This document shows positions 5,112 through 31,400 of a DNA stretch of 64,000 nt, piece by piece. The stretch lies in sequence record LC768500.1, one strand, 5' to 3'. Every line of letters begins with the position of its first letter. The stretch's first letter is position 1. A program made the position numbers and the translations under genes. The notes beneath the pieces are model-generated. The model worked only from the letters and a program-made list of their open reading frames with translations. It did no database searches and was not told the DNA's origin.

Positions 5112-5394
5112 CCAGTTATTAGAAATGATTGTGAAATTGAGCTTAGAAGCTCGTTTTAAATCTTACGGACTTTCTGGTGCGATTGATATCATCAAGGATT
5201 TAATCTACGCGTTTAAACCAAAGGATTCAGTCCCGGACATCCTATTGGGTTTTTATCTCCTCCCGGGAATGGTCGCATTAACGGAAGAAATGACTGCGAT
5301 TGAGAAAGCCAGGGATGTTTTCGGATGGGACCTTTATTGTCCTAACATGAAGTCACAACATATTGTCGTCTATGCGGGAGAACCACGTGCCTAA
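5026..5394 (+). CDS. hypothetical protein
   Basis: ORF in operon. Confidence 0.6.
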   Translation: MHRILVPVKPIADAMTTFQLPEIGAMTHNQLLEMIVKLSLEARFKSYGLSGAIDIIKDLIYAFKPKDSVPDILLGFYLLPGMVALTEEMTAIEKARDVFGWDLYCPNMKSQHIVVYAGEPRA

Positions 5395-5719
5395 GATAAC
5401 TATCCAACTTTCAATACCGCCGGGAACCGATGTGGAAGGATTTGTTTCTGCATATGGCAGTCTCTTAAGAGCACATCGGGTTAAATGTAACATCCCTAGT
5501 CAGGATGTTCAACTTAACCATCCGTTAGAAGAAGCCCGGGAGCAGATTCTGGGAGACTTCCAACGTACCAATTCCCAGCTTCAGTCGATCAGTGCTAAGT
5601 ACGCCGATGTCTCTGTGTCCAACGTTCTTTCAGATGGGCGCGGGCTGACTATCATCTTAGCATGCGACAAACCTAATAGTGAGTTCATCAATGCGGATTT
5701 CTCACACCAGTCTCAATGA
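5363..5719 (+). CDS. hypothetical protein
   Basis: ORF in operon; internal GTG after GGAG is an alternative start. Confidence 0.6.
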   Translation: MSSMRENHVPKITIQLSIPPGTDVEGFVSAYGSLLRAHRVKCNIPSQDVQLNHPLEEAREQILGDFQRTNSQLQSISAKYADVSVSNVLSDGRGLTIILACDKPNSEFINADFSHQSQ

Positions 5720-6008
5720 AGAAGCTTTCCTGGATGCGATTAAACAGATATATCTGAAAGACGATCCCCTACCTTCTGATCAGACAATTTACGAAGTCGT
5801 TTCCGATTGGGTGGATGATCTATTTCAAAATGGTCATGTGGAAGAATATATAGTCGATCTCTTTCTAGACGGTCTTCCCCCTACCGAACTGTTGAGGGGT
5901 GTAACCGTTCACCCTATCTTTAGAAAACGCGTACCGTACGCGGTCAATCCCATTGATGGTATGGTAGAAACCGTAGGGTTCCCTTTAATCATTTTGGAGT
6001 ACAGTTGA
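5679..6008 (+). CDS. hypothetical protein
   Basis: ORF in operon. Confidence 0.6.
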   Translation: MSSSMRISHTSLNEEAFLDAIKQIYLKDDPLPSDQTIYEVVSDWVDDLFQNGHVEEYIVDLFLDGLPPTELLRGVTVHPIFRKRVPYAVNPIDGMVETVGFPLIILEYS

Positions 6009-6009
6009 A

Positions 6010-6423
6010 ATGAGCATCAGTGTGAAGAACGGGGATATTGTTAGTTTTTCCCTAGTCCAAGCAAATATCATCAATAACGATTACACCAACGTAACCGTTT
6101 TAGGCCAAGGAATGTTCGACGTTGCTCGGGGAATTGACCCGGAGCTTCGCAATAAACATTACAACCTTTATCCGTATTTCAAGGATAAAGTTAACAATGT
6201 GGACGATCCTAACTACGCCGATGGCTATCTGATCTTGAAGCTATCCAATGGTGAGCTCAGCGCTATTGGTGTTCCCTGGATCAACGAAGATACCTTTGAG
6301 GTTATCAGCGGAGAAACCCGTGTTTACACATTCCCTACCTGGAAAAGTAAATATGAGTCAAGTCTGCATGAACTCTTGGCTAACCTCGGCGCCGAATATT
6401 CTTATACCAGCACTAAAAAATAA
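6010..6423 (+). CDS. conserved protein, probable SH3-like beta fold (phiKZ gp49-like by synteny)
   Basis: Beta-rich 137 aa with GVPWI motif, immediately upstream of the DNA polymerase gene. Confidence 0.55.
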   Translation: MSISVKNGDIVSFSLVQANIINNDYTNVTVLGQGMFDVARGIDPELRNKHYNLYPYFKDKVNNVDDPNYADGYLILKLSNGELSAIGVPWINEDTFEVISGETRVYTFPTWKSKYESSLHELLANLGAEYSYTSTKK

Positions 6424-6425
6424 AC

Positions 6426-6459
6426 TGTTACCCTCATCCCATTAGGGATGAGGGTAACA
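6426..6459. terminator. long hairpin terminator
   Basis: 15-bp stem TGTTACCCTCATCCC/GGGATGAGGGTAACA, then T-rich. Confidence 0.8.
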
Positions 6460-6542
6460 TCTTTTATTATTATTTTTTTATTGTCATTCCTTTTTATTAG
6501 ACGAAAACAATTTTAAATTTTAAAGTGAAACGGAGCTTAAAG

Positions 6543-8627
6543 ATGACTGAGACTTTTTTAAGTCCGTTTGTTGATGACGATTACAGTGCCGATAGGAATA
6601 TCGTTAAACACTATCATGAACAAATGGCTTTGTATCTTGGTAAAAAGCGCAATGAAGATCCTAAAGCTATTTACGAGGTACTTTCCAAACACATCCAGCC
6701 CAATCAAAACGGTTATAAAGATCGTCGTATGCAGGTTTTAGTAAAAAACAAGTACGGCGATAGAGAAGTTAAAGTCATGACAGCGTCTAATTTCTTTAAT
6801 GAAGTTAGACGTCAGAACTGCCATCTTAGTCCCAGTATGGTTGCTTACAAGAACACTGAAGAAGAGCAATCTGTTAATGCAATCGGGACAGAAAAATTTC
6901 TTAGTCTTCGGTCCCACTATAAAGGGTTAAAACAAAAGGCCAGTGACGAAGGTGATGAATGGGGTAAGAAGGCTTTCCACGAAATTCAAAACGCCTTGAA
7001 AATATTCAACAACGCCCAATCAGGCGCAATGTCATCCCGTGGGACCCCTCTTGTTAATAAGTCAGGTCATACTGCTCTGACTAGTGCTTGCCGTGCTTTG
7101 ACCAGTACCGCTAACATGTGTAATGAAAAGTTATTGGTCGGTAACCGATTCTTTAACTCGTACGAGCGAACGATGGAGAACTTACTGTCGTTGCTCTCAG
7201 TTACTGACATTAAGCGAATGGACGAAGTCATCAAGAAACTGAAGATGAACTACGCGACCATAGACCAGGTTATGGAAATGGTCAAACGTTGTTCTCGTCG
7301 GTATTGGAGAGACGTTAAACAACTCGGCTACATTAAAGAGTTTTTGGAGCAACTTCGTCCGGTTGAATTAACGGCTTTGCTTTGCAATATGGATATCGAG
7401 GGATTGAGGGTTACGAATAAAGAAATCCTTTATAAATTCTTTGATGACTTCTCTCATATACCGGAAGTTCCAGAAGGCGCTAAAGCTGAAGATTATACTC
7501 CACCTGATAACGGAGACCGATACATACTTTGTGTTTCTAAACTCTTAGCGAAACCAAGCAAAGTTCAGTTAAACTTTTTAAACCAGTATCATCTGGAAAT
7601 GGAACATAAATGGAAAGACTTTATTGAAGTCTTCTTTAAATGCTCCATTCCTCCATCGGGCATTTATGAAATCAGGGATATGATCCGAGAGGTAGTTCAA
7701 ACCTCAGATACCGATTCCTCGATTTACACCGTAGATAAAGTCGTAGAGGATTACACCGACGAAAAAGGACAATCGTTGAGATTGAATGGGGTTCTTACTT
7801 ACTTCATTCGAATGATAGCGGTTCATCAGCACGCTCAGTTAAGTGAAAACATGAACGTTGCTAAACGTTACCGTAATCGTCTGACGATGAAGAACGAGTA
7901 CTTGTTTGGAGGATATGTTACAACATTAATGTCAAAACACTATTTTGCCACACAGCTGATGGTAGAAGGGGTATTGAATAAAAATGTTGAAATGGAAATT
8001 AAGGGTGTACACTTAAGGAGTTCTAAAGTAGCTCATGAGATAAAGGATTTTGCACACAAACTCATGAGGGAGATATTGGATTGTATTTATGACAAACGTC
8101 AAATGGATGCAGCCGATATTCTCTTTAGAGCAGCAGAGTTAGAAAGGGCCATCATTAAGGATATCAACGAAGGCCAATGGGGTTGGTTAACACGCAACAC
8201 CATAAAAAGTGATGACGTGTACACATTGCCGGATCAATCTGTGTATCAATACCACTTACTCTGGGAAGAAGTGTTCTCTCCTAAATATGGACATGCACCA
8301 CCACCGCCCTATTCTGCTATGAAAGTTAACCTTTATTTAGGTAATAAAGGTAAGGTCGAAGAGTTTTGTAAGGATCTGGAAGACAGAGAACTTGCAAATC
8401 GTTTATTAGATTTCTTCGTTAAGAAAGAGAAAAAAGAAATCAGTACGTTCTTTGTTCCTGCTGACGTATTACCAAGATTAGGTAAATTGCCCGATGAAGT
8501 TATTAAAGCCGCCGACATACGACAGATCATTAAACAGAACTTGAAATCTGTTTACGCTGTTTTGGAAGCCTGCGGATTGTATATTGTAAACGACAAAATA
8601 ACACGATTAATCAGTGACGAGCATTAA
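6543..8627 (+). CDS. B-family DNA polymerase, C-terminal catalytic part (phiKZ gp50-like)
   Basis: Motif B LKIFNNAQSG, motif C SDTDS; ATG 6543 has GGAG SD. Confidence 0.88.
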   Translation: MTETFLSPFVDDDYSADRNIVKHYHEQMALYLGKKRNEDPKAIYEVLSKHIQPNQNGYKDRRMQVLVKNKYGDREVKVMTASNFFNEVRRQNCHLSPSMVAYKNTEEEQSVNAIGTEKFLSLRSHYKGLKQKASDEGDEWGKKAFHEIQNALKIFNNAQSGAMSSRGTPLVNKSGHTALTSACRALTSTANMCNEKLLVGNRFFNSYERTMENLLSLLSVTDIKRMDEVIKKLKMNYATIDQVMEMVKRCSRRYWRDVKQLGYIKEFLEQLRPVELTALLCNMDIEGLRVTNKEILYKFFDDFSHIPEVPEGAKAEDYTPPDNGDRYILCVSKLLAKPSKVQLNFLNQYHLEMEHKWKDFIEVFFKCSIPPSGIYEIRDMIREVVQTSDTDSSIYTVDKVVEDYTDEKGQSLRLNGVLTYFIRMIAVHQHAQLSENMNVAKRYRNRLTMKNEYLFGGYVTTLMSKHYFATQLMVEGVLNKNVEMEIKGVHLRSSKVAHEIKDFAHKLMREILDCIYDKRQMDAADILFRAAELERAIIKDINEGQWGWLTRNTIKSDDVYTLPDQSVYQYHLLWEEVFSPKYGHAPPPPYSAMKVNLYLGNKGKVEEFCKDLEDRELANRLLDFFVKKEKKEISTFFVPADVLPRLGKLPDEVIKAADIRQIIKQNLKSVYAVLEACGLYIVNDKITRLISDEH

Positions 8628-8629
8628 AC

Positions 8630-8664
8630 TCTACTCCTACTCCCGATAAGGGAGTAGGAGTAGA
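8630..8664. terminator. bidirectional hairpin, CTCCTAC family
   Basis: 15-bp stem between convergent genes. Confidence 0.8.
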
Positions 8665-8673
8665 TAGTCTCGT

Positions 8674-9135
8674 TTACTCAGAAATCTGAATAAATCTAAA
8701 GATATTCAATATCTTTTTAACTATGAGGTAGTAGCTCGAATATGTTTCGATTATCTTATCTTCCGAATTAAGAAATTTCTTAAGAGATGCCAATGAGTCC
8801 TTCAGTTCTTTATCCGCCTCACCGGATTCAACTGTTTTAGAGACTTTATCATACTGTGATTTAACTTCAGGAAGACTTTTCAGTTTATTAATGGACACAA
8901 AAAACTCTTTCATGCCTTTATTGAGAGAATAGATCAACGAAGGAATTTCAGACATTGCTATGTAATCGTCGGTTCTTAAATGCAGTTTTAGCTCCCTCAA
9001 TGCCCCCAACATGGCGTGGACAGAATCACCAGAAGCTTTCATTCCAGGGATAATACGATCCCCCGAATCAAGATTTTGTAAAATAATCTTTAGGTCGTTT
9101 TCTAGGGCCTTTATTCTGGCGAAGTACCCGCTCAT
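8674..9135 (-). CDS. hypothetical helical protein; possibly frameshifted C-terminal half of 9132..9632
   Basis: ATGA overlap at an A6 run, no SD. Confidence 0.55.
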   Translation of the reverse strand: MSGYFARIKALENDLKIILQNLDSGDRIIPGMKASGDSVHAMLGALRELKLHLRTDDYIAMSEIPSLIYSLNKGMKEFFVSINKLKSLPEVKSQYDKVSKTVESGEADKELKDSLASLKKFLNSEDKIIETYSSYYLIVKKILNIFRFIQISE

Positions 9136-9632
9136 TTTTTAGGGAAAGGAACGTCGTACTTTTTAAAAACTGTCAATCCTATTTCTCCTAAGCTTATTTT
9201 AGGTGAAATACTTTGGAGTCTCTCAACCTCTGCTAAAATAGCTGAACGATTAGGGAAGCCTTCATCTCGTTTAATCGCGTCTATCATTCTGGGATAGACC
9301 CTTTGAGCTATTTTTAGATCGGAACTACTTAAGAATCTTTCGATATCAGATTTTAATGAATTAGACTGTTTCTCTATTTCGGATTTTTTCTGTTCGGGTG
9401 ATTTAGAAGAAAACCATCCGAAGATCTTTTTAAATATCCCTTTAATATATTCCCAGGCTTTCTTTATTCCGTCCGAGACGGTATCTACAAATCCTTCGTT
9501 ACCCGAAACGAACATCCGGCTTGGTTCGTTAGCCCAGAGTACACCGCCTAAGTAACGTGAAGCATACGTTTCATTTCCGCTAACGCGGTCATACAACCCG
9601 TCGAAGACGAGTTCAATGTGATCGTTGTTCAT
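9132..9632 (-). CDS. putative head/internal protein with protease-cleaved leader (paralog of 42341..43117)
   Basis: Nearly identical N-terminal ~65 aa incl. two SGNE motifs followed by an amphipathic helix. Confidence 0.75.
   Translation of the reverse strand: MNNDHIELVFDGLYDRVSGNETYASRYLGGVLWANEPSRMFVSGNEGFVDTVSDGIKKAWEYIKGIFKKIFGWFSSKSPEQKKSEIEKQSNSLKSDIERFLSSSDLKIAQRVYPRMIDAIKRDEGFPNRSAILAEVERLQSISPKISLGEIGLTVFKKYDVPFPKK
9565..9620 (-). repeat. 56-nt exact repeat, copy 1 (inverted relative to 42353..42408)
   Basis: Direct base-by-base comparison. Confidence 0.95.
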
Positions 9633-9641
9633 TTAATTTTC

Positions 9642-10754
9642 CTATTTAGAAAGTTTATTTTGTTTTAACATGGTGGTGACTTGTTCTAAGTATTGTACTT
9701 GTAACGGTCCAGGAACGAAATGCTTAATCATTCCTTTGATATCCTGTCTAGCCCAAACATCGATATGACCATTGACCGTCCCCATTGCGTTGAAGCTTTT
9801 ATTATTGAGTGCCAAACTAAGCGTTAATAACTTCATTATTGGGAATTGCCAAATGGCGTTTGTTTGACTATATCGATTGTATCTCTTCGCATCTACAATG
9901 AGAGGGTTGACATCCATCGTCATAAAGTCGCCTATTCTCTGTATGACGTGTTCCGGGGAATAGCTCGGTGTTAGCGTTAAGGTTTCGACCAAGAAGGTTA
10001 AGAATCCTTTGAGCAATTCACCCACTGGATTGATATTAAATTCTCCCTTGATTACGGTTAATTGGTCGTCGATATTCTCTCCGTTAACTACGACGTTATA
10101 GAGCGAATTGAATACGCTTAATTGATGTTGCAAACACCTTGCGTTGATTAGGGGAGTGCCGGCCAAATAACGATGAGGACCTAATCCAGTTTCCGATCCT
10201 TCGGCTAATCGTTCGTTAAGGTAACGCCAATATCCTATACCCAAAGCCGTGATATCCACCCCTATTACCGCAAACCCACCATAATTCATCGGATCGTTTT
10301 TGAGAGAAGTGGTGTTAGTGTATCGGATGTCCGTTTCAGTGCTAATCAATGGGATGATACTGCAAATGTCTCTTTCGTCTAAATCGAAATAATCGTTGAG
10401 GTTATCTTTAGCCGGGTAAGAAACCAACATTTCGGTCAGCCCATTCGCGTACATCACGTTTTGTTTTACGATACCTTTATTGTATATAGACGTGATTCCG
10501 ATAGCGGACGCCCAACTATCTACCTGCATCTCGATCATTGCTTTAAGGTAAGTAGGATCCCATTCTGGCTGAATGTTCATCAATGAAAGCAACTGAACTA
10601 AAGGATGTTGGTTCTGTAAAACGTAGGTGGTGTTGTCGTTCCGTGCTATCCACTGACGACGATTGAAATCCAAGATACGTATTATATTACTGAGCCTACC
10701 ATATTTATAGACGGCAGGACGATGATCAGTTGTTATTAATTTTAAAGGTTTCAT
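9642..10754 (-). CDS. conserved virion structural protein (phiKZ gp52-like by synteny)
   Basis: 370-aa ORF divergent from chimallin, as in phiKZ-like genomes. Confidence 0.6.
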   Translation of the reverse strand: MKPLKLITTDHRPAVYKYGRLSNIIRILDFNRRQWIARNDNTTYVLQNQHPLVQLLSLMNIQPEWDPTYLKAMIEMQVDSWASAIGITSIYNKGIVKQNVMYANGLTEMLVSYPAKDNLNDYFDLDERDICSIIPLISTETDIRYTNTTSLKNDPMNYGGFAVIGVDITALGIGYWRYLNERLAEGSETGLGPHRYLAGTPLINARCLQHQLSVFNSLYNVVVNGENIDDQLTVIKGEFNINPVGELLKGFLTFLVETLTLTPSYSPEHVIQRIGDFMTMDVNPLIVDAKRYNRYSQTNAIWQFPIMKLLTLSLALNNKSFNAMGTVNGHIDVWARQDIKGMIKHFVPGPLQVQYLEQVTTMLKQNKLSK

Positions 10755-11013
10755 TGTAGTCCTGTTAGTAACTCAGTATTATGTTATTACACATATTAAT
10801 TATATGTAAACAAATACACCTCTCCGAAAGGAGGGGAGACCAATGCCGCGGAGTAGAAATCCGTTAAGCATAAAATCGATCAGTTTTTACTACCCCTAAA
10901 TAATTTCAGACCGATATTATTTAATCGGATAAACAACACAAATGTTTATCTGTTTTGATCAAACTTAATAACATCCCCCTTTATAAAAAGCTAATAGCTA
11001 TTAGGAGTTAAGA

Positions 11014-13026
11014 ATGTCCGACAATCAAAATGGCAACAACTGGGAACAAACCGTCCTGAACACCGCTGCTGGTAAAGGAGAGCCGATCGTCTCTGCTTCT
11101 GCCGAGAATTTCGGTTCTCAGCTGCTCGGTCTGCTCGGCCAGGCTTCTCTTCTGGGTTCTTCCAAGAACGTGCCGGAAGTAGAAGAAACCGCGGCTTTGA
11201 TCAAGAAACGCGTAACCGATCTGAAAAACGGTACGCCGGGCGAAACCCAGAAGAAGATCCTGCCGGAAGTGAACATCATCACCAAACCGATCATCTCTGC
11301 ACTGCCGGGCATCGTGCTCTCCCTGCACATGAACAACAACCCTGCGGTATACGTCATGCCGGTGCTGTTCTCTAACCGTCATCTGACCAATACCCTGGAA
11401 GAGATCCAGATCGACAACGGCGTTAACCAACAGCGCAAAATGTCCATGCCGTTTACCCCGGATTCCTACGCTCGTGCTGATCTGTTCGAACAGATCAAAA
11501 TGCACTACAAAGCGATGCTCCAGGATAAAGGTGTGAGCGAATGCGTGATCATCAACGTGATGGTTATCGACCTGGAACAGATCGTTGGTGACGATGTCCT
11601 GAATCAGGGCAAATCGCCGCTGCTGCGTGATGAAATCATGCGTAGCTGGGAACAGGGTCTGATGGTACAGATCGCAAAAATCGCAGCTAACCAGCCGAAA
11701 GCATCTCTGCCTTCTCCGTTCTCTGCGACCGGCGGCAAAGCGTATGGTCAGCACGGTAATGCGATTGCTCGCGTTGAACCGATCCGCGGTCAGTATGTTA
11801 ACGAAGGCCTGCTGTCTCCGGCTAACCTGACCATCCGCATGCAAACTGCTAACCATAACGGTTATCAGGGTAATGCTGAGCAGTCCCGCGAAATCGTCAA
11901 CACCTACGCGACCGTTAGCCTGATGGGTTCTCCGATCCAGCAGTTCAACCCGCAGCTGACCGGTAACATTCCGCAGCCGTACCTGCAGACCCCTAACGGT
12001 CGTCCTCAGGGTTACACCCCGCTGCAGCCGATCGTTATCATGAACCACGCTAAAGCTGGCGAGGTGCTGGGTGATGCAACTGGTCTGTCGACCTACTTCA
12101 TGGGCCTGTTCTCTCTGATGGCGACCAACAGCAACTACCTGTTTGCTGAAGCTCTGCGTTCTAAGAACGTAGGTTCTCGTGGCTCCCTGACTGATATGGA
12201 ACACCGCATCCGTCAGATGGAAAATGGATTACCTCCGCGCACTAAGGGTACTGAGATGACCGACGCTAAACTGTCGGATATCGATTTCACCACTAACTGG
12301 ATTCGCGCCAATATTGGACCTAAAGCAGTCTTTGCTGCTGACCTGATCCAGTTCGGCCCGGATGCGGCAATCTCCAACTTCCTGTTCAACCTCACCTCCG
12401 GTGCGAAAGACTACAGCAAATGCGTGAAAACCGTTATTGCTATCGTCGATTCCATCTCCGGTGATGCGAAAGCCATGTCTGCGGTTATCGCAGAAAACCA
12501 GGCCAACAACAATGGTAACGGCGGATGGATTCCGGGTAAACCGGTACTGCACGTTTCTAACGCGCTGATCCCTGTCGGTACTGCTGTACTGGATAACAAA
12601 CGCATTGCGCTCGGCGAAGTGGACGAGATGTTCCTGTCCAAGCACTACAAAGATCAGATCACCCCGATGAACCAGTACCTGGAAAACATGTACGGGTCTA
12701 ACCCGAACGTGCCGGAAAAACTGCGTCGCTATAACCTGCTCATCCAGCTGTCCACCATCTTCTCTGAAGGTGTAAACCTGTTCGGCTTCGCTCGTCGTTG
12801 CTACTGGGATCCGCTGTTCATGGATGCGTTCACTAAAGCGATGAACACCATCGGTTCTCTGCAGGTTACTGGCTCTATGGGTCAGTTCGCTGCTAACGTT
12901 CAGGTCTTCGCTCCTGGCCAGCAGTATATCTCTCAGGCAACTGCTGGTAACTCCGGTGGCGTCGTTCTGGGTAACGGTATGATGCTGGGTGCAGGTGGCG
13001 GTCTGGTGTTTGGCCCGTCCTACTAA
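11014..13026 (+). CDS. chmA: chimallin, major phage nuclear shell protein
   Basis: 670 aa, extreme high-expression codon bias, directly upstream of nvRNAP beta'; GGAG SD; own terminator. Confidence 0.85.
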   Translation: MSDNQNGNNWEQTVLNTAAGKGEPIVSASAENFGSQLLGLLGQASLLGSSKNVPEVEETAALIKKRVTDLKNGTPGETQKKILPEVNIITKPIISALPGIVLSLHMNNNPAVYVMPVLFSNRHLTNTLEEIQIDNGVNQQRKMSMPFTPDSYARADLFEQIKMHYKAMLQDKGVSECVIINVMVIDLEQIVGDDVLNQGKSPLLRDEIMRSWEQGLMVQIAKIAANQPKASLPSPFSATGGKAYGQHGNAIARVEPIRGQYVNEGLLSPANLTIRMQTANHNGYQGNAEQSREIVNTYATVSLMGSPIQQFNPQLTGNIPQPYLQTPNGRPQGYTPLQPIVIMNHAKAGEVLGDATGLSTYFMGLFSLMATNSNYLFAEALRSKNVGSRGSLTDMEHRIRQMENGLPPRTKGTEMTDAKLSDIDFTTNWIRANIGPKAVFAADLIQFGPDAAISNFLFNLTSGAKDYSKCVKTVIAIVDSISGDAKAMSAVIAENQANNNGNGGWIPGKPVLHVSNALIPVGTAVLDNKRIALGEVDEMFLSKHYKDQITPMNQYLENMYGSNPNVPEKLRRYNLLIQLSTIFSEGVNLFGFARRCYWDPLFMDAFTKAMNTIGSLQVTGSMGQFAANVQVFAPGQQYISQATAGNSGGVVLGNGMMLGAGGGLVFGPSY

Positions 13027-13112: not shown

Positions 13113-14516
13113 ATGGATCAGTACGGTGATCGTATTATTGATGCATTAACAGCGCCTGAATTTTCATCATTGCAACCAGAGGCTCAGTTTAAAACTTATG
13201 CCGAACAATACGGTGGTGACCTTTCTGACGACAAACGTTTTTATGAACCCCTTTATCCCGACTTCACTGACTATAACCGTTTGCATGATACTGCTAAGGT
13301 CGATCCGGTTTACCTGAACGATTTCGATTTTTGTTTGGAAGAAGACCGAGAACGAATCGCATCTTTGATTCGTATGGACTTCAACACCGACACATTCGAA
13401 ACCGTCGCGAGATGTAGCTGTGGGCATCTGAAGGGCAACTATTTGTTGGGTCAGAAAAGATCATGTCCCATCTGCCAATCCCTTGTAGAGAAAGTCGTAG
13501 AGACTTCCTTAGATACTAAGGTATGGGTCAGGGTTCCAGAAGGCGTAGTTGGATTTATCAGTCCGGCTTATTACAAAACCTTCTTATCGAAGATCGCGAC
13601 TAATTCTCCAAAGATTGAGATCGTGACTTGGCTCATCGATCCGTCTTATCGTCGGGGAAGCCGAGCTCAGCATACTGAGTCTGGTCGTCGGATGTTGGCT
13701 GAACTCGATAAACTCGGAATAGTGCCCGGGCTTAACAGCTTTATATTGAACGCGGACAGATTCATGGAACACTTCCTTGTTGGTGAAGGAAGAGGTGCCG
13801 TGAGCATGAAGCCGGCTGATGGTAAAAAGCATTTGGATAAGTATTACGAATATCGTCATCTTATCTTCCCGCGGTACCTGTCCGTACCCAATAAACTCGC
13901 TACCATCATCGAGCAAGATGGTAAAGATAAGTACGTTTCTTCAACCCAATTGAAAACCTCGGCAATCTACCAATCTATTGCAGATACGAGAGATTCTACT
14001 GAGTTTTATAAATGTACGATTAAGGACCTTAAAGAGAACGCTGATATCGTCGGGAAGGCGATAGTTCGATTAGGTAAACAGAACTCTGATAACTATAAGA
14101 GTCAGCTGTTTGCTAAATCGAGCCTGATACGTAAACACGTAATCGCGGGATCATTATCTTTATCAGGTCGTGGTGTTATCACATCAACGACTGGATTACA
14201 TGATGCCGGTGTTGCTAAGATACCTTGGATCATGGCAGTGGCTATGCTGAAGAAACACATCCTGGGATATCTTTACCGTTTAGGGTACAGCCCCCTGAAA
14301 GCCGAAAGTGTAATCAGTACAGCAGCACACCAAGTCGTCCCGGTAATCGATCAATTCTTTACCAAGCACGAAAAGCAAAAAGACATTGTCTGCATTTTAG
14401 GAAGAAACCCATCAATTCAGTACCTGTCAGCAAAAGCCTTCTTCATGTCGATCAACCGAGATTTAGAAGACGAGTCGATAAACTTACCAATACTCTCAGT
14501 TAAAACCTTTAATGCT
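13113..14516 (+). CDS. rpoC: nvRNAP beta' N-terminal subunit (phiKZ gp55-like), exon 1
   Basis: Zn finger CSCG..CPIC, SGRGVI, GRNPS, ends FNA (TTT AAT GCT); spliced product ~534 aa. Confidence 0.9.
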
Positions 14517-15946
14517 AAATCAAGAAGTGAGAGTTCCATACTTTTGTGAGAGAAAGCATGAGAACTATTGAGTTTGAAAGAACACCACGTGAAACAGTAC
14601 TTTTTGAAGAAGACGGTTGGGCTCATCACCCGACTATCAAAAACATCCTATTAAAGGAGAAAGGAAACACTTATCGTTTATTTACCGACGGTAAATGGAA
14701 CGAAGTTATTCCCGAACAAAAATCGAGATACATTTATGTATCCTTTGGCGGGATAGAAATACCCCTTCATCAATTAAAGCTGGAAACCTTTTTAGAAAGA
14801 CCAGCTTCTACCGAAGGACTTAAATTGTTAGGCAATCATATCGATGGTGATATCTTTAATAACGACATCGATAACCTTGAATGGGTGACCTACAGAGGAA
14901 ACATCATTCATGCCTATGAATCAGGATTAAGATCAGATAATAAGCCGTTGGTTTTGGTCGATTTACATTCAGGCGAGGAATTTCCGTTCTATAGCCTAAA
15001 TGAATGTGCTAGATATCTGAAACTTAACCCCTCTAAGATAACCCAGTTTTTGAGAAAGAAGAGAAGTTACCCATTCCAGTGGAAATACGATTTCAAACTA
15101 GATGGGTTGTCTCCTAATAATCTGACCTCTAAAGACGTTGGTAAGGCATCGCAAAATAAACCAAGACCTTTTATTATGCGAAACATAAATACCGGCGAAG
15201 AAAGAGAACTTGGGCTCTATCGTTCGATTAGAAGAATTTGGGGCGTGTCGGAAAGAACTCTCCAAAAAGTTTTAAGCGGTAAAATGAAGATAGATGATGT
15301 TTGGGAATTTGTGCCGATTACTGATCCCGACAGACTTATCCATCTTTCTAATACACTGCCAGACATAAAGGAGGCGTTTGATACAACTTCTAATAGAAAA
15401 AATATGGCGGCTAAAAAGTCTAAAGCGATTAAAGTAACGGGTCCTGATGAAACCACGTTCTATTCGTCTATTAAAGACTTTTCACAGAAAAACGGATTCA
15501 ACGCCGCAACCATACAAAAGTTTATTTATAAGAACCCGGGGAAACCCTGGAAGAATTATGTTATCACGTATGTTTAACTCTCACTTCTTTGGCCCAGTAG
15601 ACGCGAAAGCTCTGCTGCGTACTCTCTCTAATTGCTGGAAACTCCTAAAGCTCGTTCACCTCGTATAGAGGGGTCGAAAGACAGAAACAACGAACGAGAT
15701 ATCTCACGCTAACCAATAATGCTAAAAGATAAATAATGGGTTACCTAGCAGCGAACCCTACCTCGGTAGGAGACGTTCAACGACTAGAGCTGAAACGCTC
15801 GTAGGATCCTAGTGTGGATCCGAAATGGGAGAGGACCTAAGTTTGACAGTAGTCAAATATGGTTAAGATATAGTCTGTGCCCTCAGGAAATCTGAGGGAG
15901 GGTGTCTCAGCACACCTGCTCCATATGGAACGGAGTGGACAATCAG
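14517..15946 (+). mobile_element. group I intron A (IA2-like) with HNH ORF in loop L1
   Basis: 5' exon ends in U, omega-G 15946; AAUUGCUGGAAA, GUUCAACGACUA 15775-86, AAGAUAUAGUCU 15865-76; 14-bp stem 14522-35/15576-89 closes the ORF loop. Confidence 0.92.
14558..15577 (+). CDS. intron-encoded HNH homing endonuclease (I-HmuI-like, NUMOD1/IENR1-type repeats)
   Basis: NHIDGDIFNNDIDNLEWVT..N..HA; repeated D..SGE/N.NTGE modules; GTG 14546 is an alternative start. Confidence 0.9.
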   Translation: MRTIEFERTPRETVLFEEDGWAHHPTIKNILLKEKGNTYRLFTDGKWNEVIPEQKSRYIYVSFGGIEIPLHQLKLETFLERPASTEGLKLLGNHIDGDIFNNDIDNLEWVTYRGNIIHAYESGLRSDNKPLVLVDLHSGEEFPFYSLNECARYLKLNPSKITQFLRKKRSYPFQWKYDFKLDGLSPNNLTSKDVGKASQNKPRPFIMRNINTGEERELGLYRSIRRIWGVSERTLQKVLSGKMKIDDVWEFVPITDPDRLIHLSNTLPDIKEAFDTTSNRKNMAAKKSKAIKVTGPDETTFYSSIKDFSQKNGFNAATIQKFIYKNPGKPWKNYVITYV

Positions 15947-15958
15947 GATTTTGACGGT
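15947..15958 (+). CDS. rpoC: nvRNAP beta' micro-exon 2 (12 nt, DFDG)
   Basis: GAT TTT GAC GGT preceded by G and ending in U; restores NADFDGD. Confidence 0.88.
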
Positions 15959-16269
15959 AAACGTATTGCCGCCTAGCTTAGTAATGAGTTAGTGAATAAG
16001 TGCGGAATGAAGCGTAGAAGCTGAAATGCCGATGCGAACCGAAGGTCTAAGAGTAACGTCTTGACCAGGGGCAGAGCGTAGGAGATGAAACCATTTATGG
16101 AATATAATTCTCCCAAGAGGCCGCACCACGATGAGTATTAATCTCATCCGCTCTTTTAGAGCGCCTATCGTGAACGAGGGTGAAAACGTACGCCACACAA
16201 TCCGAATAGAAAGGGTTGAGCTAAGAGATAAAAAACTCTTAGGCGAATAGATCTTTATTCGTAATGATG
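15959..16269 (+). ncRNA. group I intron B, 311 nt, ORF-less
   Basis: IGS GUAUUGCCG 15963-71 pairs 5' exon CGGU (U.G wobble) and 3' exon GAUAC; P3 16000-05/16121-26; P7 GAGCGUA 16074-80/UACGCC 16189-94; omega-G 16269. Confidence 0.85.
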
Positions 16270-16458
16270 GATACCATGTACTGTTATGTATTGAGTGATT
16301 TAAAAGGTAAGGCCAAAGCGTATGGGTCGTTCGGTCATCAGTCCATGCTTGATGAAAACGAACCATTTACAATAAGTCGATTTGCTGATCAAACTTCAAC
16401 GAATTTGATGAACCTCAACAACATGATGAGAGGAACACCAATCAATGAATGCGGCTGA
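16270..16458 (+). CDS. rpoC: nvRNAP beta' exon 3
   Basis: Starts D-T-M, completing NADFDGDTM (cf. canonical NADFDGDQM). Confidence 0.88.
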   Translation, partial: DTMYCYVLSDLKGKAKAYGSFGHQSMLDENEPFTISRFADQTSTNLMNLNNMMRGTPINECG

Positions 16459-27463: not shown

Positions 27464-28690
27464 ATGGCAGAAAAATTTGTCTATAAGAAACCCATAAACC
27501 AGCTTAAACCAGAGTTGATGTCTATCAATATTAACTTGAACTCATTTCCCTGGTCGGTTTCATCGTCACGTCAATATATGTTGGGTGGTAACGTAGCTAA
27601 AGCAGTTTCCATACAAGGGGCGTCGACAAGACGCAATCCTACCGGCTTCGAACCAGAATATGCTAAGTACGCTCGTAAAGTCGTAGCCCCGTCAAACATG
27701 ACTGTAGAGAGAACATTTTATCAGCGATCTCTACAACCCGGTAGCAATCTTGCAGATGATTGGGCGGAGATCCACGTTATCTTCTTTAATGAAGAACACC
27801 AGCTTTATGATCTCTTAACTATTCCACGATTTAATACGCAGAATACTTACGTTGGGTTTGAGTACAAACTTAACAAGGATAACCTTCGTAAACTCAGTAC
27901 AGAATCACCGACCTTTAAGAAAGGCGATGTGTTTGCGTATTCTCCAAATATCAGCGATACTGGAGAGTGGATGTTTGGTACTGAGGCGATGGTTTGTGGG
28001 ATGACCGCACCTTATACCGAAGAAGACGGCATTGCTATTACTGAGAGCTTTGCTCGTAAGCTGACCAGCATCTTCCAGCATTCTCGTAAGTTCTCCTGGA
28101 ACGAAGCAGAGTACGTCCCCCTGAATCTTTATGGAACATTAGATTCCCCACGACCGTTCCCTGAGAACGGAGAAAGTATTCGTAGTGACGGCATCGTCAT
28201 GGGATTCCGTAGACGTGACACTTCGAGCGCTCTGGTGGGCTTAACCAAAAAAGCACTCATGCGTCCTGATCAAACTTATGATATTCTTTTCTACGCACCT
28301 AAAGATTGTGTTGTTAAAAATATCTCCGTCAAGTCAGATCGTTATAAGAACGTTTCCAATAACAAACGTCAGGAGAAGATTACTCAGCCTCACACTCAGT
28401 TGCTGGAACGTTATGAACAGCGCTCTAACCAAATGGCGTTTGAGGTCCAGGAGTGGTATTACCGGATGGATGCGAAGTTTAAAGATTCCGATCTTCCTTT
28501 CACCCATGCGCTCCAAGAGTTCATCTCTAAACAGTTAGGCGACGTCACTAAAAACTTCGCTACCGGCAAGTATAACCAGGTCAAGCGAACTCACCGCAAT
28601 AAGGCGCTTTTGGATTGGAACGTCGAGATTACTTTAAAGGAAAGAGTCACTGCGCGTAAACGTTTTAAAATTACCGACACTCAAGGTGCT
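27464..28690 (+). CDS. rpoB: nvRNAP beta C-terminal subunit (phiKZ gp71-73-like), exon 1
   Basis: SSSRQYMLG, EDGIAITES, ends KITDTQGA; spliced product ~703 aa. Confidence 0.88.
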
Positions 28691-30515
28691 TCGCCCCACA
28701 AGTATCCGTTATCTTAAAATGATGTTGGGGTTGTAAAGACTTTTTGAAGGAGGTCTTTATGACGGTGAAATTGATAGGAAATCCCGATATAGAAGTAGAC
28801 TTACTCGAAAAGTCTTTATTTATAAAGGGAGAAGAAATTATTGAAGGGAACGCCTTCCGAGTAGATTTATTCGGTGGAAGTTTCCAAGTGACACGGGAAT
28901 GGCTAATCTCGTTCGCTCGTTATAACTTGGATATCCCAAAAGAGCATGTCGATAAAATAACCTTTATTCGATTTGCTAAAACATGGTCTCCGTTTCGTAA
29001 AACCAATAAGCGATACGAAATACCCGTCTTTGACGAACCTATGGTTTCTGAAGACGGATACGCGATCATACCAACCGATTTTGAATATGAAATTAGTCGG
29101 GAAGGAGTTATTAGAAATCGTAAGACCAAACGAATCGCTCCATTGTACGAGAAAGACTACCTTTTTTGTTCGCTAAAGGGAGAGGAAAGGTTACATCGTA
29201 CTGTGGCTCTTGTTTGGTGCTATAACGAGAACTTCGAAACACGACCGATTGTTAATCATAAAGATGGAAATAAGCTTAATCCTCACGCAGATAACTTGGA
29301 ATGGTCATCGTTTTCTTTAAACGCAATTCATGCGTTTAAAGAAGGGCTTAGGGATGATAATAAGCCTTGTGTGATGAGGAACATCTTTACCGGAGAGGTT
29401 ACTGAGTTTTATTCGGTAAGTGCCGTTGCTTATGAATTCGGACTAGGATTTGAGTCAGCCTTCGCGTACCTTAAACGTAAAATGCGGCAATCCCCTTTCA
29501 TGAAAGAATATGAGTTTGTGTTGAAAGGAGATCCTTGGGAAATTCCGTTGGGCGGTATAAAGGGAGTAAGAGGGCGGTATCTCTTCACTATAGAAAAACC
29601 AAATGGTGAAGTGGTATACCGGACCAATATCCCTAAAATCATATCCGAATTCAAGTTATGGAATCTCCCGAGTTGGTCGAAGGATTGCGTTGTAGAAAGG
29701 ATGAAGGAAGAACATCCCGATTGGTCGATTTCTGTTATTGATTACTTTAGGGCGGGCGAGTATCAGGTCAAAAACCTACAAACCGGAGAAGTGATCGATT
29801 TCGTAAAACCCGCCGAAGTATCCGGGTTGATAGGCGTCCCTCGTCAAACCATTAATAAGTGGTTAACCGAAAAACAATTTAACGTCAATCACAACGGTTG
29901 GGTATTCAGGGAGAAATCATCTTCTGAATGGGATGAGGTTTTCCCGAAACCCAATTCTAAGAAAGCGGTATTGGTGACCGACATCAATACAGGTAAAGTG
30001 TCTGAGTTTGAATCCGTAATAGCCGCGGCTTCTCACTTTGGTATTAACAAACGTTCAGTGGGTAGAAGGATACTATCCGGAAGTCTTTTCGAGAGCAAGA
30101 AGTTTAGTTACAAGCCCCAACATCCTTCATAAGACATTTGATATTTGTGAGACAGGGCCGGCTAGGCACGAAAGTCCTAGACCGTTATCTCTTTGAATTG
30201 CTGGAAAAACCACAAAAGTCTGATGCCTGCTTAGCAGGAGGGGATAACCCGGAAATAAGTTCAGACCTGACCTATGCTAACCAATAACGCTAAGGGTCGT
30301 TAAAAAGGGTGGATCAGCAGCGAACCCTACTTCGGTAGGAGGCGTTCAACGACTAAGGCCTAACCAGCCTGTACTGGAGACATGATGTTTCTGGGAAGTG
30401 GAGAGAGACCTAAGTTCGGCTCTAGCCGAATATGGTTAAGATATAGTCTGTTCCCTAATAACACTAGGGCGGGTGTCTTCGCACACCGGGTTCCACGATG
30501 GAACTGGACAAAAAG
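28691..30515 (+). mobile_element. group I intron C (IA2-like) with HNH ORF in loop L1
   Basis: Exon ends GCU, omega-G 30515; GUUCAACGACUA 30344-55, AAGAUAUAGUCU 30438-49; 10-bp stem 28697-706/30140-49. Confidence 0.92.
28759..30132 (+). CDS. intron-encoded HNH homing endonuclease with multiple NUMOD1/IENR1-type repeats
   Basis: RLHRTVA...VNHKDGNKLNPHADNLEW..N..HA; repeats N..TGEV/QTGEV/NTGKV; SD AAGGAGG. Confidence 0.9.
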   Translation: MTVKLIGNPDIEVDLLEKSLFIKGEEIIEGNAFRVDLFGGSFQVTREWLISFARYNLDIPKEHVDKITFIRFAKTWSPFRKTNKRYEIPVFDEPMVSEDGYAIIPTDFEYEISREGVIRNRKTKRIAPLYEKDYLFCSLKGEERLHRTVALVWCYNENFETRPIVNHKDGNKLNPHADNLEWSSFSLNAIHAFKEGLRDDNKPCVMRNIFTGEVTEFYSVSAVAYEFGLGFESAFAYLKRKMRQSPFMKEYEFVLKGDPWEIPLGGIKGVRGRYLFTIEKPNGEVVYRTNIPKIISEFKLWNLPSWSKDCVVERMKEEHPDWSISVIDYFRAGEYQVKNLQTGEVIDFVKPAEVSGLIGVPRQTINKWLTEKQFNVNHNGWVFREKSSSEWDEVFPKPNSKKAVLVTDINTGKVSEFESVIAAASHFGINKRSVGRRILSGSLFESKKFSYKPQHPS

Positions 30516-31400
30516 AAAGGTGTAATCGTTCACATTATACCCGATGCTAACGCACCGCGATACGCCGATGGACGTCGATCAGAAGTCATTATTAACAATA
30601 CTCCTGCTTTTAGACGCCAGATCTTTTCGGCGTTAATAGAAGCTGGGGTTAACTTAATAGGCTTGGAGATCGAAAACAGGATCAGAGTTCTCGTTGCTCA
30701 AAATGGAGGGTATAAGAAAGCTTATCAGGAGCTCATTAAGTTTTATCGTTCTACCGCTCCGGAGTTCGCTGATATCGTTGATACCGCTCTCCCCACGGAA
30801 GAAGAACAATTCGATCACGTTGACTTTGTGTTGAGTGATAAGATCTCTGTTCAGCGTCGAAGCGACACTCAGCTGTATGGCGCGGATATTCTGAGATTGA
30901 TGCGGGAAACCTATCCGGATATCAAACCTCAAAAGGCAATTTACGTTAACGAGCTCGGTCAGGAAATCACCACCATGTTCCCTGTCAGTATCAGCAGCAT
31001 GTATTACATCCTGCTTGATAAGTTCGGTAACGATATGAGTTGCCAGTCATTCCCTAAGCGTAACGTGTACGGTCTGCCGTCTAAGTTGAATCATGGCGAT
31101 CGTTATAGGGATTGGCACCGCGCTCAACCAGGTCGTAATATGGGTGAGGCAGAATCACGTCAGAAAAATACTCAAATGGGGGGAGAGGAAGTTGTAAGGC
31201 AGTTGGCGGCAGCTAACTCCCCTTACGTTTGTATCATGATGACGAAACGTATTATTCGGGCTGATAATCCGTTCCGAATTAAAACCATTATTAAACCTGA
31301 AGAGTATGCGATGAGCCGATCTTTGGGAATGACGATGAATTTACTCAACGACGCGGGTTATACTTTACGTAAGGAAAAAGACAGTGATCTTACTTCGTGA
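30516..31400 (+). CDS. rpoB: nvRNAP beta, exon 2
   Basis: Starts KGVIVHIIPD, giving QGAKG (cf. HGNKG); GRNMGEAESR (cf. GQRFGEME). Confidence 0.88.
   Translation, partial: KGVIVHIIPDANAPRYADGRRSEVIINNTPAFRRQIFSALIEAGVNLIGLEIENRIRVLVAQNGGYKKAYQELIKFYRSTAPEFADIVDTALPTEEEQFDHVDFVLSDKISVQRRSDTQLYGADILRLMRETYPDIKPQKAIYVNELGQEITTMFPVSISSMYYILLDKFGNDMSCQSFPKRNVYGLPSKLNHGDRYRDWHRAQPGRNMGEAESRQKNTQMGGEEVVRQLAAANSPYVCIMMTKRIIRADNPFRIKTIIKPEEYAMSRSLGMTMNLLNDAGYTLRKEKDSDLTS

Follow-up and report, generated by a model that had tools for sequence, protein, structure and literature searches.

Klebsiella phage phiKp_32 (sequence record LC768500.1, genome of 251 kb) carries the codons for the catalytic motif NADFDGD of its non-virion RNA polymerase (nvRNAP) in three separate pieces. 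Judging from homology, the gene is the phiKZ gp55-type gene for the nvRNAP beta'-N subunit, and in phiKp_32 its NADFDGD motif would exist only after two splices, which remove intron A and intron B from either side of a micro-exon of 12 nucleotides (nt). The window analysed comprises the first 64 kb of the genome (64,000 nt), and its coordinates correspond 1:1 to those of the record. NADFDGD carries the three Mg-binding Asp residues of multisubunit RNA polymerases (RNAPs), and the nvRNAP of phiKZ is an essential enzyme that transcribes the middle and late genes. We consider it highly probable that both intervening segments are group I introns and that their removal, with inclusion of the micro-exon, makes the functional subunit.

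The exon boundaries can be read directly from the letters. Specifically, exon 1 ends with AAT GCT (14511-14516) and, beyond the micro-exon, coding resumes with GAT ACC ATG from position 16270; T14516 and T15958 close the upstream exons, and G15946 and G16269 close the intervening segments, an agreement well outside what chance would give. Excision of 14517-15946 (1430 nt) and 15959-16269 (311 nt) yields a continuous gene of 534 amino acids (aa), reading …FNADFDGDTMY…, with the predicted spliced junction ...TTTAATGCT/GATTTTGACGGT/GATACCATG... (a slash marks an exon junction or insertion point throughout) and TFNADFDGDTMYCYVLSDLK as the predicted junction-spanning tryptic peptide. A first-pass annotation, made from the sequence alone, had proposed the split of NADFDGD by two tandem introns with these boundaries, a U at the end of both donors, a G at the end of both introns and the location of two of the three catalytic Asp residues in the 12-nt exon. 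The letters were confirmed base for base, and the micro-exon does encode D-F-D-G.

The same conclusion is reached by comparison with relatives in which the gene is uninterrupted. In a megablast search with a 3363-nt query, the Stenotrophomonas phage BUCTxx100 and the Klebsiella phages YC1 and KPN8 matched across 1622 nt, which equals 3363-1430-311. BUCTxx100 carries a single annotated and uninterrupted coding sequence (CDS) of 534 aa (...SVKTFNADFDGDTMYCYVL...), residues 1-468 of which are 100% identical to the exon 1 protein. The joined phiKp_32 exons and the intron-less allele have equal length and 100% amino-acid identity, all 42 nt differences between them being synonymous. Joining thus gives NADFDGDTM, as had been expected, and the alignment to intron-less relatives returns the exact 534-aa protein of BUCTxx100. 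In addition, an independent isolate, Raoultella phage VB_ZK_P1, has an identical micro-exon and introns at both sites, and because it shares this architecture an assembly artefact is excluded.

The deposited annotation of phiKp_32 reports at this locus a truncated CDS (13113-14549) and an endonuclease CDS, and contains neither the micro-exon nor exon 3, in line with the earlier claim that open reading frame (ORF) callers miss the gene. A second NADFDGD copy, named in the first-pass annotation as a possible alternative source of the subunit, was not found: in a six-frame search of the 251-kb genome, DFDG occurred, outside the micro-exon, at three unrelated places only, none of them followed by D, and tblastn in the phiKp_32 genome matched two exon places only. 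An intein or translational bypass was rejected, since the segments of 1430 and 311 nt are neither of them a multiple of 3, contain in-frame stops and have ribozyme structure. We also observed that the last six bases of intron B (16264-16269) are two ATG codons in the reading frame of exon 3; for this reason exon 3 can be annotated as a free-standing 'hypothetical protein' of 60-64 aa, as was done in phage Miami and in VB_ZK_P1.

The identity of the gene was taken from PDB and PHROGs because Pfam was silent, with no family for exon 1, exon 3 or the downstream ORF. The intron-less orthologue matched the phiKZ non-virion RNAP chain 'PHIKZ055 / PHIKZ056.1' (7OGP_A; E=4e-36, residues 46-508) as well as many bacterial beta' chains (E about 1e-5, with NADFDGD aligned), and exon 1 matched PHROG 2987 'RNA polymerase beta subunit' (E=4.8e-123). 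The syntenic upstream gene is annotated as 'nuclear shell protein' in phiKZ, EL, USC-1, PDCC-1, PS1, HHBS47_1 and FishSpeaker; on account of this chimallin homologue upstream in relatives, we take phiKp_32 as a nucleus-forming jumbo phage and the gene as the gp55 equivalent.

Intron A is recognised by the Rfam group I model RF00028 with 58.6 bits (cutoff 50), through a whole-model alignment at 15572-15898. In its P1 helix, GCU/A (14514-14517) pairs with UGGC (15590-15593), with the wobble U14516.G15591, and the helix is continued by a perfect 14-base-pair (bp) stem (14522-14535 with 15576-15589) that loops out the endonuclease ORF and is the region's sole inverted repeat; the loop at that place in VB_ZK_P1 is AACAU. 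Site A of VB_ZK_P1 holds an ORF-less intron of 365 nt (RF00028, 63.8 bits), and site A is empty in BUCTxx100, YC1, KPN8 and Miami. The proposal that the first bases of the micro-exon are the 3' exon of intron A agrees with GAT starting at 15947; the P10 potential is confined to bases 1-2 of the micro-exon, i.e. 2 bp.

The ORF in the P1 loop (14558-15577) is a predicted HNH homing endonuclease inside a mobile intron. It matched PHROG 59 'HNH endonuclease' (E=4e-30), shows the motif NHIDGD...NN...NLEW...N..H and scored just below the Pfam cutoffs for HNH_3 (22.4, cutoff 24.8) and for an I-HmuI NUMOD-like domain (21.1, cutoff 27). Among the endonucleases compared its nearest relative is EL gp25 (36.7% identity, E=1e-58), which lies inside an intron at the matching NA/D site.

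Intron B shows the boundary pairings of a group I intron. Specifically, CGGU/AA pairs with UUGCCG at 6 of 6 positions, CCG lying opposite exon CGG and the wobble being U15958.G15968, and the 3' exon GAUAC pairs with GUAUU at 5 of 5 positions to form P10, the terminal intron base being G16269. The participation of the micro-exon CGGU in P1, with a U.G wobble, had been put forward beforehand and stood when checked against the guide sequence. In intron-less alleles the corresponding codons are GAC TTC GAC GGC, and the Gly codon changes from GGC to GGT wherever site B is occupied; in Miami, where a different intron occupies site B, GUGUU stands opposite exon GACAC in a compensatory manner. Every proposed helix of intron B is complementary in the phiKp_32 sequence. 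The fold has a minimum-free-energy z of -3.5, and the unconstrained centroid gives P1, P2, the long-range P3, P7.1 and the P8a/P8b hairpins. The predicted topology is subgroup IA-like, with P7.1 between P7 and P3', the position at which the Rfam alignment of the td-like intron A has an insert. Between phiKp_32 and VB_ZK_P1, intron B is 98% conserved, with a compensatory rearrangement in P6a. A group II intron was excluded by the size of the element and by the presence of the group I boundary rules and core.

Relatives of intron B define a family of RNA elements. A blastn search with intron B turned up three Aeromonas jumbo phages that share a 93-nt core with it; in these the elements sit in a virion RNAP beta'-like gene at ...GGDFDG/DQLSAN..., follow GGT and end in G; their DFDG/D boundary is the codon boundary of intron B, in a paralogous gene. 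The 16-mer CAGGGGCAGAGCRTAG, which covers J6/7 and the 5' strand of P7, matched more than 111 IMG/VR contigs. At least 81 of these have, in addition, both the J8/7-P7' block and the GAUAAAAAR loop and are hence family members; the two further conserved blocks rule out that the 16-mer matches are mostly chance. Members of this B-type family are about 250 nt long and ORF-less, share invariant GAACCGAAGG, CAGGGGCAGAGCRUAG, GAUAAAAAR and AUAAC, and interrupt tape-measure-like, terminase-like and other ORFs of the IMG/VR contigs. Intron B itself matched the family profile in nhmmer with E=3.6e-40.

We assayed covariation in 56 non-redundant members, aligned by MAFFT without regard to structure, scoring P3, P4, P6, P6a, P7 (the pseudoknot), P7.1, P8, P9 and P9.1; P1 and P2 are not alignable by MAFFT across the family and were checked outside this test, sequence by sequence. 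Paired cells amounted to 95.0%, compared to 76.3% after shuffling and 28-44% when the partners were slid by 1-3 columns. Double changes were present in 30 of the 42 pairs, the covariation score was 0.535 against 0.180 for shuffled alignments, and none of 500 shuffles reached the observed value on any measure. P3 is 99.7% paired and covaries at all six of its pairs; the variable pair of P7 (column 195/321) is AU in 48 members and GC in 8, and is never broken.

One member (IMG/VR locus L104, 459-699) gave a whole-model alignment to RF00028 that is sub-threshold (30.8 bits, E=8.2e-5) and maps P3, P4-P6, J6/7-P7, P3', P8, J8/7-P7' and P9 as proposed. At the curated threshold, RF00028 called 0 of the 10 B-type family loci tested. 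The family search also matched phages ROSA and JCL1032, both listed as homologues of IA1/IA2 prophage group I introns (Tourasse & Kolstø, PMC2504315). In three IMG/VR terminase-like genes (L044 452-1749, L104 25-756 and L116 2927-3657) we observed one or two Rfam-called introns followed, a few hundred bases later in the same ORF, by a B-type intron, giving up to three introns in succession.

In conclusion, family covariation, the sub-threshold full-length RF00028 alignment of a member and the relatives at the same codon boundary support the assignment of intron B as a group I intron missed by the curated Rfam model. The claim of two tandem group I introns consequently stands on different grounds for its two halves, intron A being called by Rfam and intron B, which Rfam misses, being backed by the covariation of its family. 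The features of the locus are collected in Table 1.

Table 1. Predicted features of the split nvRNAP beta'-N locus of phiKp_32 (window coordinates).
Feature	Position	Strand	Remarks
Upstream gene, nuclear shell protein (chimallin) homologue	11014..13026	+	synteny
Exon 1, nvRNAP beta'-N gene	13113..14516	+	468 codons, ending ...K-T-F-N-A
Intron A P1 5' strand	14514..14535	+	GCU + A1 (14514-14517), then 14-nt arm 14522-14535
Intron A, td-like group I, subgroup IA type, 1430 nt	14517..15946	+	at NA/DFDGD
Putative HNH homing endonuclease gene, 339 aa	14558..15577	+	within the intron A P1 loop
Intron A catalytic core P2-P9	15572..15898	+	Rfam alignment; canonical AAUUGCUGGAAA, GUUCAACGACUA, AAGAUAUAGUCU blocks
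Intron A extended-P1 3' strand	15576..15593	+	includes internal guide U15590 G15591 G15592 C15593
Micro-exon, 12 nt	15947..15958	+	GAT TTT GAC GGT = D-F-D-G
Intron B, candidate ORF-less group I, subgroup-IA-like, B-type family, 311 nt	15959..16269	+	at NADFDG/D
Intron B internal guide sequence GUAUUGCCG	15963..15971	+	P1 and P10 pairings contiguous on it
Intron B P3 5' strand GUGCGG	16000..16005	+	partner CCGCAC 16121-16126; pseudoknot with P7
Intron B P7 5' strand GCGUA	16076..16080	+	partner UACGC 16189-16193
Intron B P7.1	16081-16113	+	between P7 and P3'; covaries in family
Exon 3	16270..16458	+	D-T-M-Y-C-Y...E-C-G, 62 codons + stop

These data suggest a scheme in which the pre-mRNA would contain two ribozymes, separated by 12 nt, that fold independently and use one guide sequence each. 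Intron A would pair exon GCU with UGGC, and intron B would pair CGGU with GCCG and GAUAC with GUAUU, so that the claims on the micro-exon would not overlap, bases 1-2 serving P10 of intron A and bases 9-12 serving P1 of intron B. Each intron would presumably excise itself by a guanosine-initiated two-step transesterification, in either order, and splicing would place exons 1 and 3 on either side of the 12-nt exon in a 534-codon ORF with an intact Mg-binding NADFDGD. By analogy with phiKZ we infer that self-splicing takes place in phiKp_32, that the micro-exon is included and the intron homes, and that middle and late transcription would depend on both splicing reactions. If the nvRNAP is essential as in phiKZ, the gene must work, since phiKp_32 and VB_ZK_P1 are propagated isolates.

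Several points weigh against this scheme. RF00028 is silent on intron B at the gathering threshold and also at E<=10, on 2 kb and on a 356-nt slice, and a relaxed Rfam scan around the intron returned chance-level snoR26 and PutA matches only. P5 of the phiKp_32 intron B has 2 bp and its P8 holds an insert of ~45 nt with two alternative pairings, so that its activity could be impaired or could need a protein cofactor. The guanosine-binding site cannot be confirmed from sequence alone, and our literature search found no paper on phiKp_32. Moreover, P10 of intron A spans just 2 bp, and GAU opens both of the downstream exons; as 12 nt is a multiple of three, exon-skipping would mean an in-frame loss of DFDG with its two catalytic Asp residues. 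Such skipping is documented for the tandem introns of Twort orf142 and Coxiella 23S, as summarised in PMC10136302, and for SIOphi terL (PMC11878797).

Some of these points could be brought together in a different explanation, namely that intron B is a relic, degenerate or dependent on a protein, with poor self-splicing, and that functional mRNA is rare or the two introns leave as one unit, giving mainly a beta' without DFDG. The missing Rfam call, a P5 shorter and a P8 more expanded than in the relatives, the shared GAU with the 2-bp P10 and the known skipping by tandem group I introns would all fit. Nevertheless, intron B is 98% conserved in two isolates with its compensatory P6a rearrangement, keeps all the conserved blocks and helices of a family under strong structural selection and has textbook P1 and P10 pairings, and the phage is viable with no other copy of the motif in its genome; we therefore regard this explanation as improbable.

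It is less probable still that the gene is split at the protein level, with a 483-aa product (to 14549) and a 64-aa product (from 16264) assembling without RNA splicing. The ORF with two ATG codons that begins at 16264, just ahead of exon 3, the annotation of the exon 3 piece as a separate CDS in Miami and VB_ZK_P1, and the natural split of beta and beta' in jumbo phages speak for it, but D-F-D-G would then never be translated and two of the three Mg-binding Asp residues would be lost. The intervening segments are, furthermore, Rfam-called and covariation-supported group I introns with correct U/G boundaries, and the intron-less relatives encode one continuous protein. That the locus is an artefact of assembly or sequencing, or a dead gene whose function a second copy supplies, is suggested by nothing but its unusual appearance, and the chance of it is close to nil: the architecture is repeated in an independently isolated phage from a different country, an analogous 9-nt architecture exists in Aeromonas phage PS1, and no further NADFDGD-encoding sequence is present in any frame of the genome. 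Removal of two group I introns, with inclusion of the micro-exon, thus remains the preferred reading of the locus.

The alleles of the gene among these phages form a series. Both sites are empty in BUCTxx100, YC1 and KPN8; Miami has an empty site A and, at site B, a different intron of 1415 nt with an ORF; VB_ZK_P1 combines its ORF-less 365-nt intron A with the 311-nt intron B; and phiKp_32 combines the 1430-nt, ORF-containing intron A with the 311-nt intron B. Of the 42 synonymous differences from the intron-less allele, 14 fall in a 52-nt span of the spliced gene (nt 1407-1458, i.e. 15949-15958 + 16270-16311), where their density is 27%, compared to 2% upstream and 0 in 147 nt downstream. 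This tract appears as the pattern produced by co-conversion or by selection for endonuclease-resistant sites. Miami shares the synonymous block downstream of site B (16270-16311) with phiKp_32 and VB_ZK_P1, and its site B intron is another ribozyme, td-like and with an HNH endonuclease related to that of USC-1; one intron may thus have replaced another at a fixed site that had been converted before, through repeated exchange. In this scheme the HNH endonuclease would spread intron A into empty alleles during co-infection, and intron B, which encodes no nuclease and lies 12 nt from intron A, would most likely move by co-conversion.

The catalytic motif turned out to be a hot-spot of insertion in jumbo phages. 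In a tblastn survey, many of the 60 records listed end at residues 468-477, i.e. at the motif, and the junctions read in 14 loci revealed five insertion points within NADFDGD. N/A is used in phiKZ; A/D in EL and for intron A of phiKp_32 and VB_ZK_P1; D/F in PDCC-1, CF8, AVP1 and intron 1 of PS1; D/G in the phiKp_32 virion RNAP gene, whose junction was set against the intron-less Miami gene (GGDFDGDQLN); and G/D in USC-1, Miami, HHBS47_1, FishSpeaker, intron 2 of PS1, intron B of phiKp_32 and VB_ZK_P1 and the Aeromonas virion RNAP genes. The junctions of HHBS47_1 and FishSpeaker were read by eye, and all 17 introns delimited by script at the motif are preceded by U and end in G. The endonucleases group by site, that of phiKp_32 intron A with EL and that of Miami with USC-1 (E=9e-71). 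A strict td-like core pattern missed EL, USC-1 and PDCC-1, all of them Rfam-called, as well as Miami and phiKZ, and a non-match to this pattern is accordingly not a negative.

PS1 (NC_070998) appears to be a second, independent double occupancy of the motif. Its gene reads AATGCCGAT, a 474-nt intron, TTCGACGGT, a 1152-nt intron with an HNH ORF, and GATAACATG, which corresponds to NAD/FDG/DNMY with a 9-nt exon (TTCGACGGT, positions 5861-5869 of locus L128, in which the introns region is 5387-7021) that is unannotated. Both introns are td-like as judged by visible core blocks, and AVP1, a genus-mate of PS1, has the first intron only. PS1 and phiKp_32 thus share the gene, the motif, the tandem group I introns and a micro-exon, and PS1 differs in its sites (D/F and G/D), in its 9-nt F-D-G exon and in having the endonuclease in the second intron. 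A further and rather speculative idea, to which we give little credence, is that an arms race makes the 21 nt of the motif a hot-spot on which introns with endonucleases, from different lineages, pile up, and that the ratio of micro-exon inclusion to skipping sets or times nvRNAP activity. Skipping would take out just the micro-exon, 12 nt in phiKp_32 and 9 nt in PS1, and leave the frame intact. If this were true, exon-skipped beta' without the catalytic Asp residues could assemble into a dead polymerase, and ribozyme-level alternative splicing would regulate a viral RNA polymerase or, alternatively, a measurable cost would limit intron stacking.

Other RNAP genes of phiKp_32 are interrupted as well. 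The ORFs 27464-28717 and 30498-31400 match PHROG 3295 'RNA polymerase beta subunit', covering profile positions 3-402 and 403-696, respectively. The stretch between them holds an ORF for a 462-aa HNH endonuclease (28744-30132) and a group I core called by Rfam (30118-30469, 51.3 bits), and this part of the window (27464-31400) corresponds to phiKZ gp71/72/73. In the virion RNAP beta'-like gene, the catalytic motif is cut at GGDFD/GDQL by a 380-nt ORF-less td-like intron (genome positions 218606-218985), which has the canonical GUUCAACGACUAG and UAAGAUAUAGUCU blocks, is uncalled by Rfam at gathering and is followed just downstream by a burst of synonymous changes. Another Rfam group I match (51.9 bits, genome positions 223354-223690) follows CDS 8360-9412 and lies between the large CDSs 5156-8323 and 9713-10846 (coordinates of locus L126); it probably marks another intron-split virion RNAP gene. 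Altogether phiKp_32 has at least 5 group I introns, and all 4 of those with an identified host gene are in RNAP genes. As for other mobile elements, two IS200/IS605-type TnpB genes are annotated in the phiKp_32 genome (119897-121033 and 147036-148172), and a 'putative transposase' is annotated just downstream of the RNAP locus in Miami.

None of the annotated proteins of phiKp_32, VB_ZK_P1, Miami and PS1 contains this catalytic motif of an essential polymerase, gene callers being blind to exons of 9-12 nt; jumbo-phage pipelines under-report both introns and intact RNAP subunits, since the callers miss micro-exons and Rfam misses an abundant family. Within one seven-residue motif there are five insertion points, two ribozyme families, two double occupancies independent of each other and no fewer than three lineages of endonuclease. 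The motif offers a small natural model of the competition among mobile introns for the DNA that rival viruses conserve most, and of their stacking there. The shared 12-nt exon also tests the minimal exon need of two group I ribozymes, and how an in-frame, inactivating exon-skipping is avoided.

Introns in phiKZ RNAP genes are described in the literature, and the earlier statement that single introns are known in phiKZ nvRNAP genes is borne out by the gp55 intron at N/ADFDGD. The orthologous phiKZ locus (gp55/gp56/gp56.1) has its intron in the same motif codons, with a related HNH endonuclease, after a U and ending in G, but this single intron lies one codon upstream, with no second intron and no micro-exon. 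In Pseudomonas phage EL (gp24/gp25/gp26) the insertion at NA/DFDGD is that of intron A (Rfam core, 54.9 bits), but the intron is again single and DFDGD is contiguous in exon 2. In the jumbo phage PhiPA3, an RNAP gene has a group I intron at conserved catalytic residues, and this intron encodes the HNH endonuclease gp210 (PMC11620839); the case differs from phiKp_32 in being a single intron in the beta subunit of another RNAP. An intron endonuclease was shown to mediate inter-phage interference in this related phage (PMC11620839), and by analogy interference with co-infecting phages is a plausible selective rationale for the phiKp_32 endonuclease.

With regard to tandem introns, the closest case is Twort orf142, in which introns 2 and 3, two group I introns in one phage ORF, flank a very short exon as in phiKp_32. 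The Twort exon has 23 nt and lies between near-identical IA2 introns, skipping was demonstrated, and the host gene is not known to have a catalytic motif (Landthaler & Shub 1999, summarised in PMC10136302); in phiKp_32, by contrast, the exon has 12 nt and two catalytic Asp residues and the introns belong to two different families. The 23S rRNA of Coxiella burnetii has tandem group I introns of different subgroups around a 34-nt exon (PMC10136302), and tandem group I introns are also known in phiNIT1 RNR and SIOphi terL, the phiNIT1 'small exon' having been found only by cDNA (PMC11878797). For these three the splicing data are experimental, the genes are rRNA or other genes and the exon is longer or of unstated size, whereas in phiKp_32 splicing is predicted from the comparisons above. 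Fungal and protist mitochondria regularly have mini-exons of less than ~4 codons between group I/II introns, missed by gene callers (PMC10352661); these are organellar, with maturase- or host-factor-assisted splicing, whereas phiKp_32 is a virus.

The B-type family overlaps, through ROSA and JCL1032, with the IA1/IA2 introns of tape-measure and terminase genes in Firmicute (pro)phages (PMC2504315), which are from Gram-positive phages and in genes other than jumbo-phage RNAP genes; the literature search found no description of the family in the latter. Nor did it find a paper on double occupancy of an RNAP catalytic motif, NADFDGD combined with intron giving unrelated papers only. The initial claim of no described case holds, within the searchable literature, for this motif and exon size. 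It does not hold for the kind of arrangement, which is known from Twort, Coxiella and the mitochondrial mini-exons, nor for phiKp_32 as a unique case, since in PS1 the motif is likewise split around an exon, of 9 nt. In conclusion, one intron in the motif (phiKZ), tandem introns round a short exon and mitochondrial mini-exons are already known, and the new elements are the double occupancy, the five insertion positions, the 9-nt exon of PS1 and the fact that the motif of the phiKp_32 virion RNAP is cut too. Against these known systems the single case is less surprising than first thought, and it is the comparative picture that merits an experimental look.

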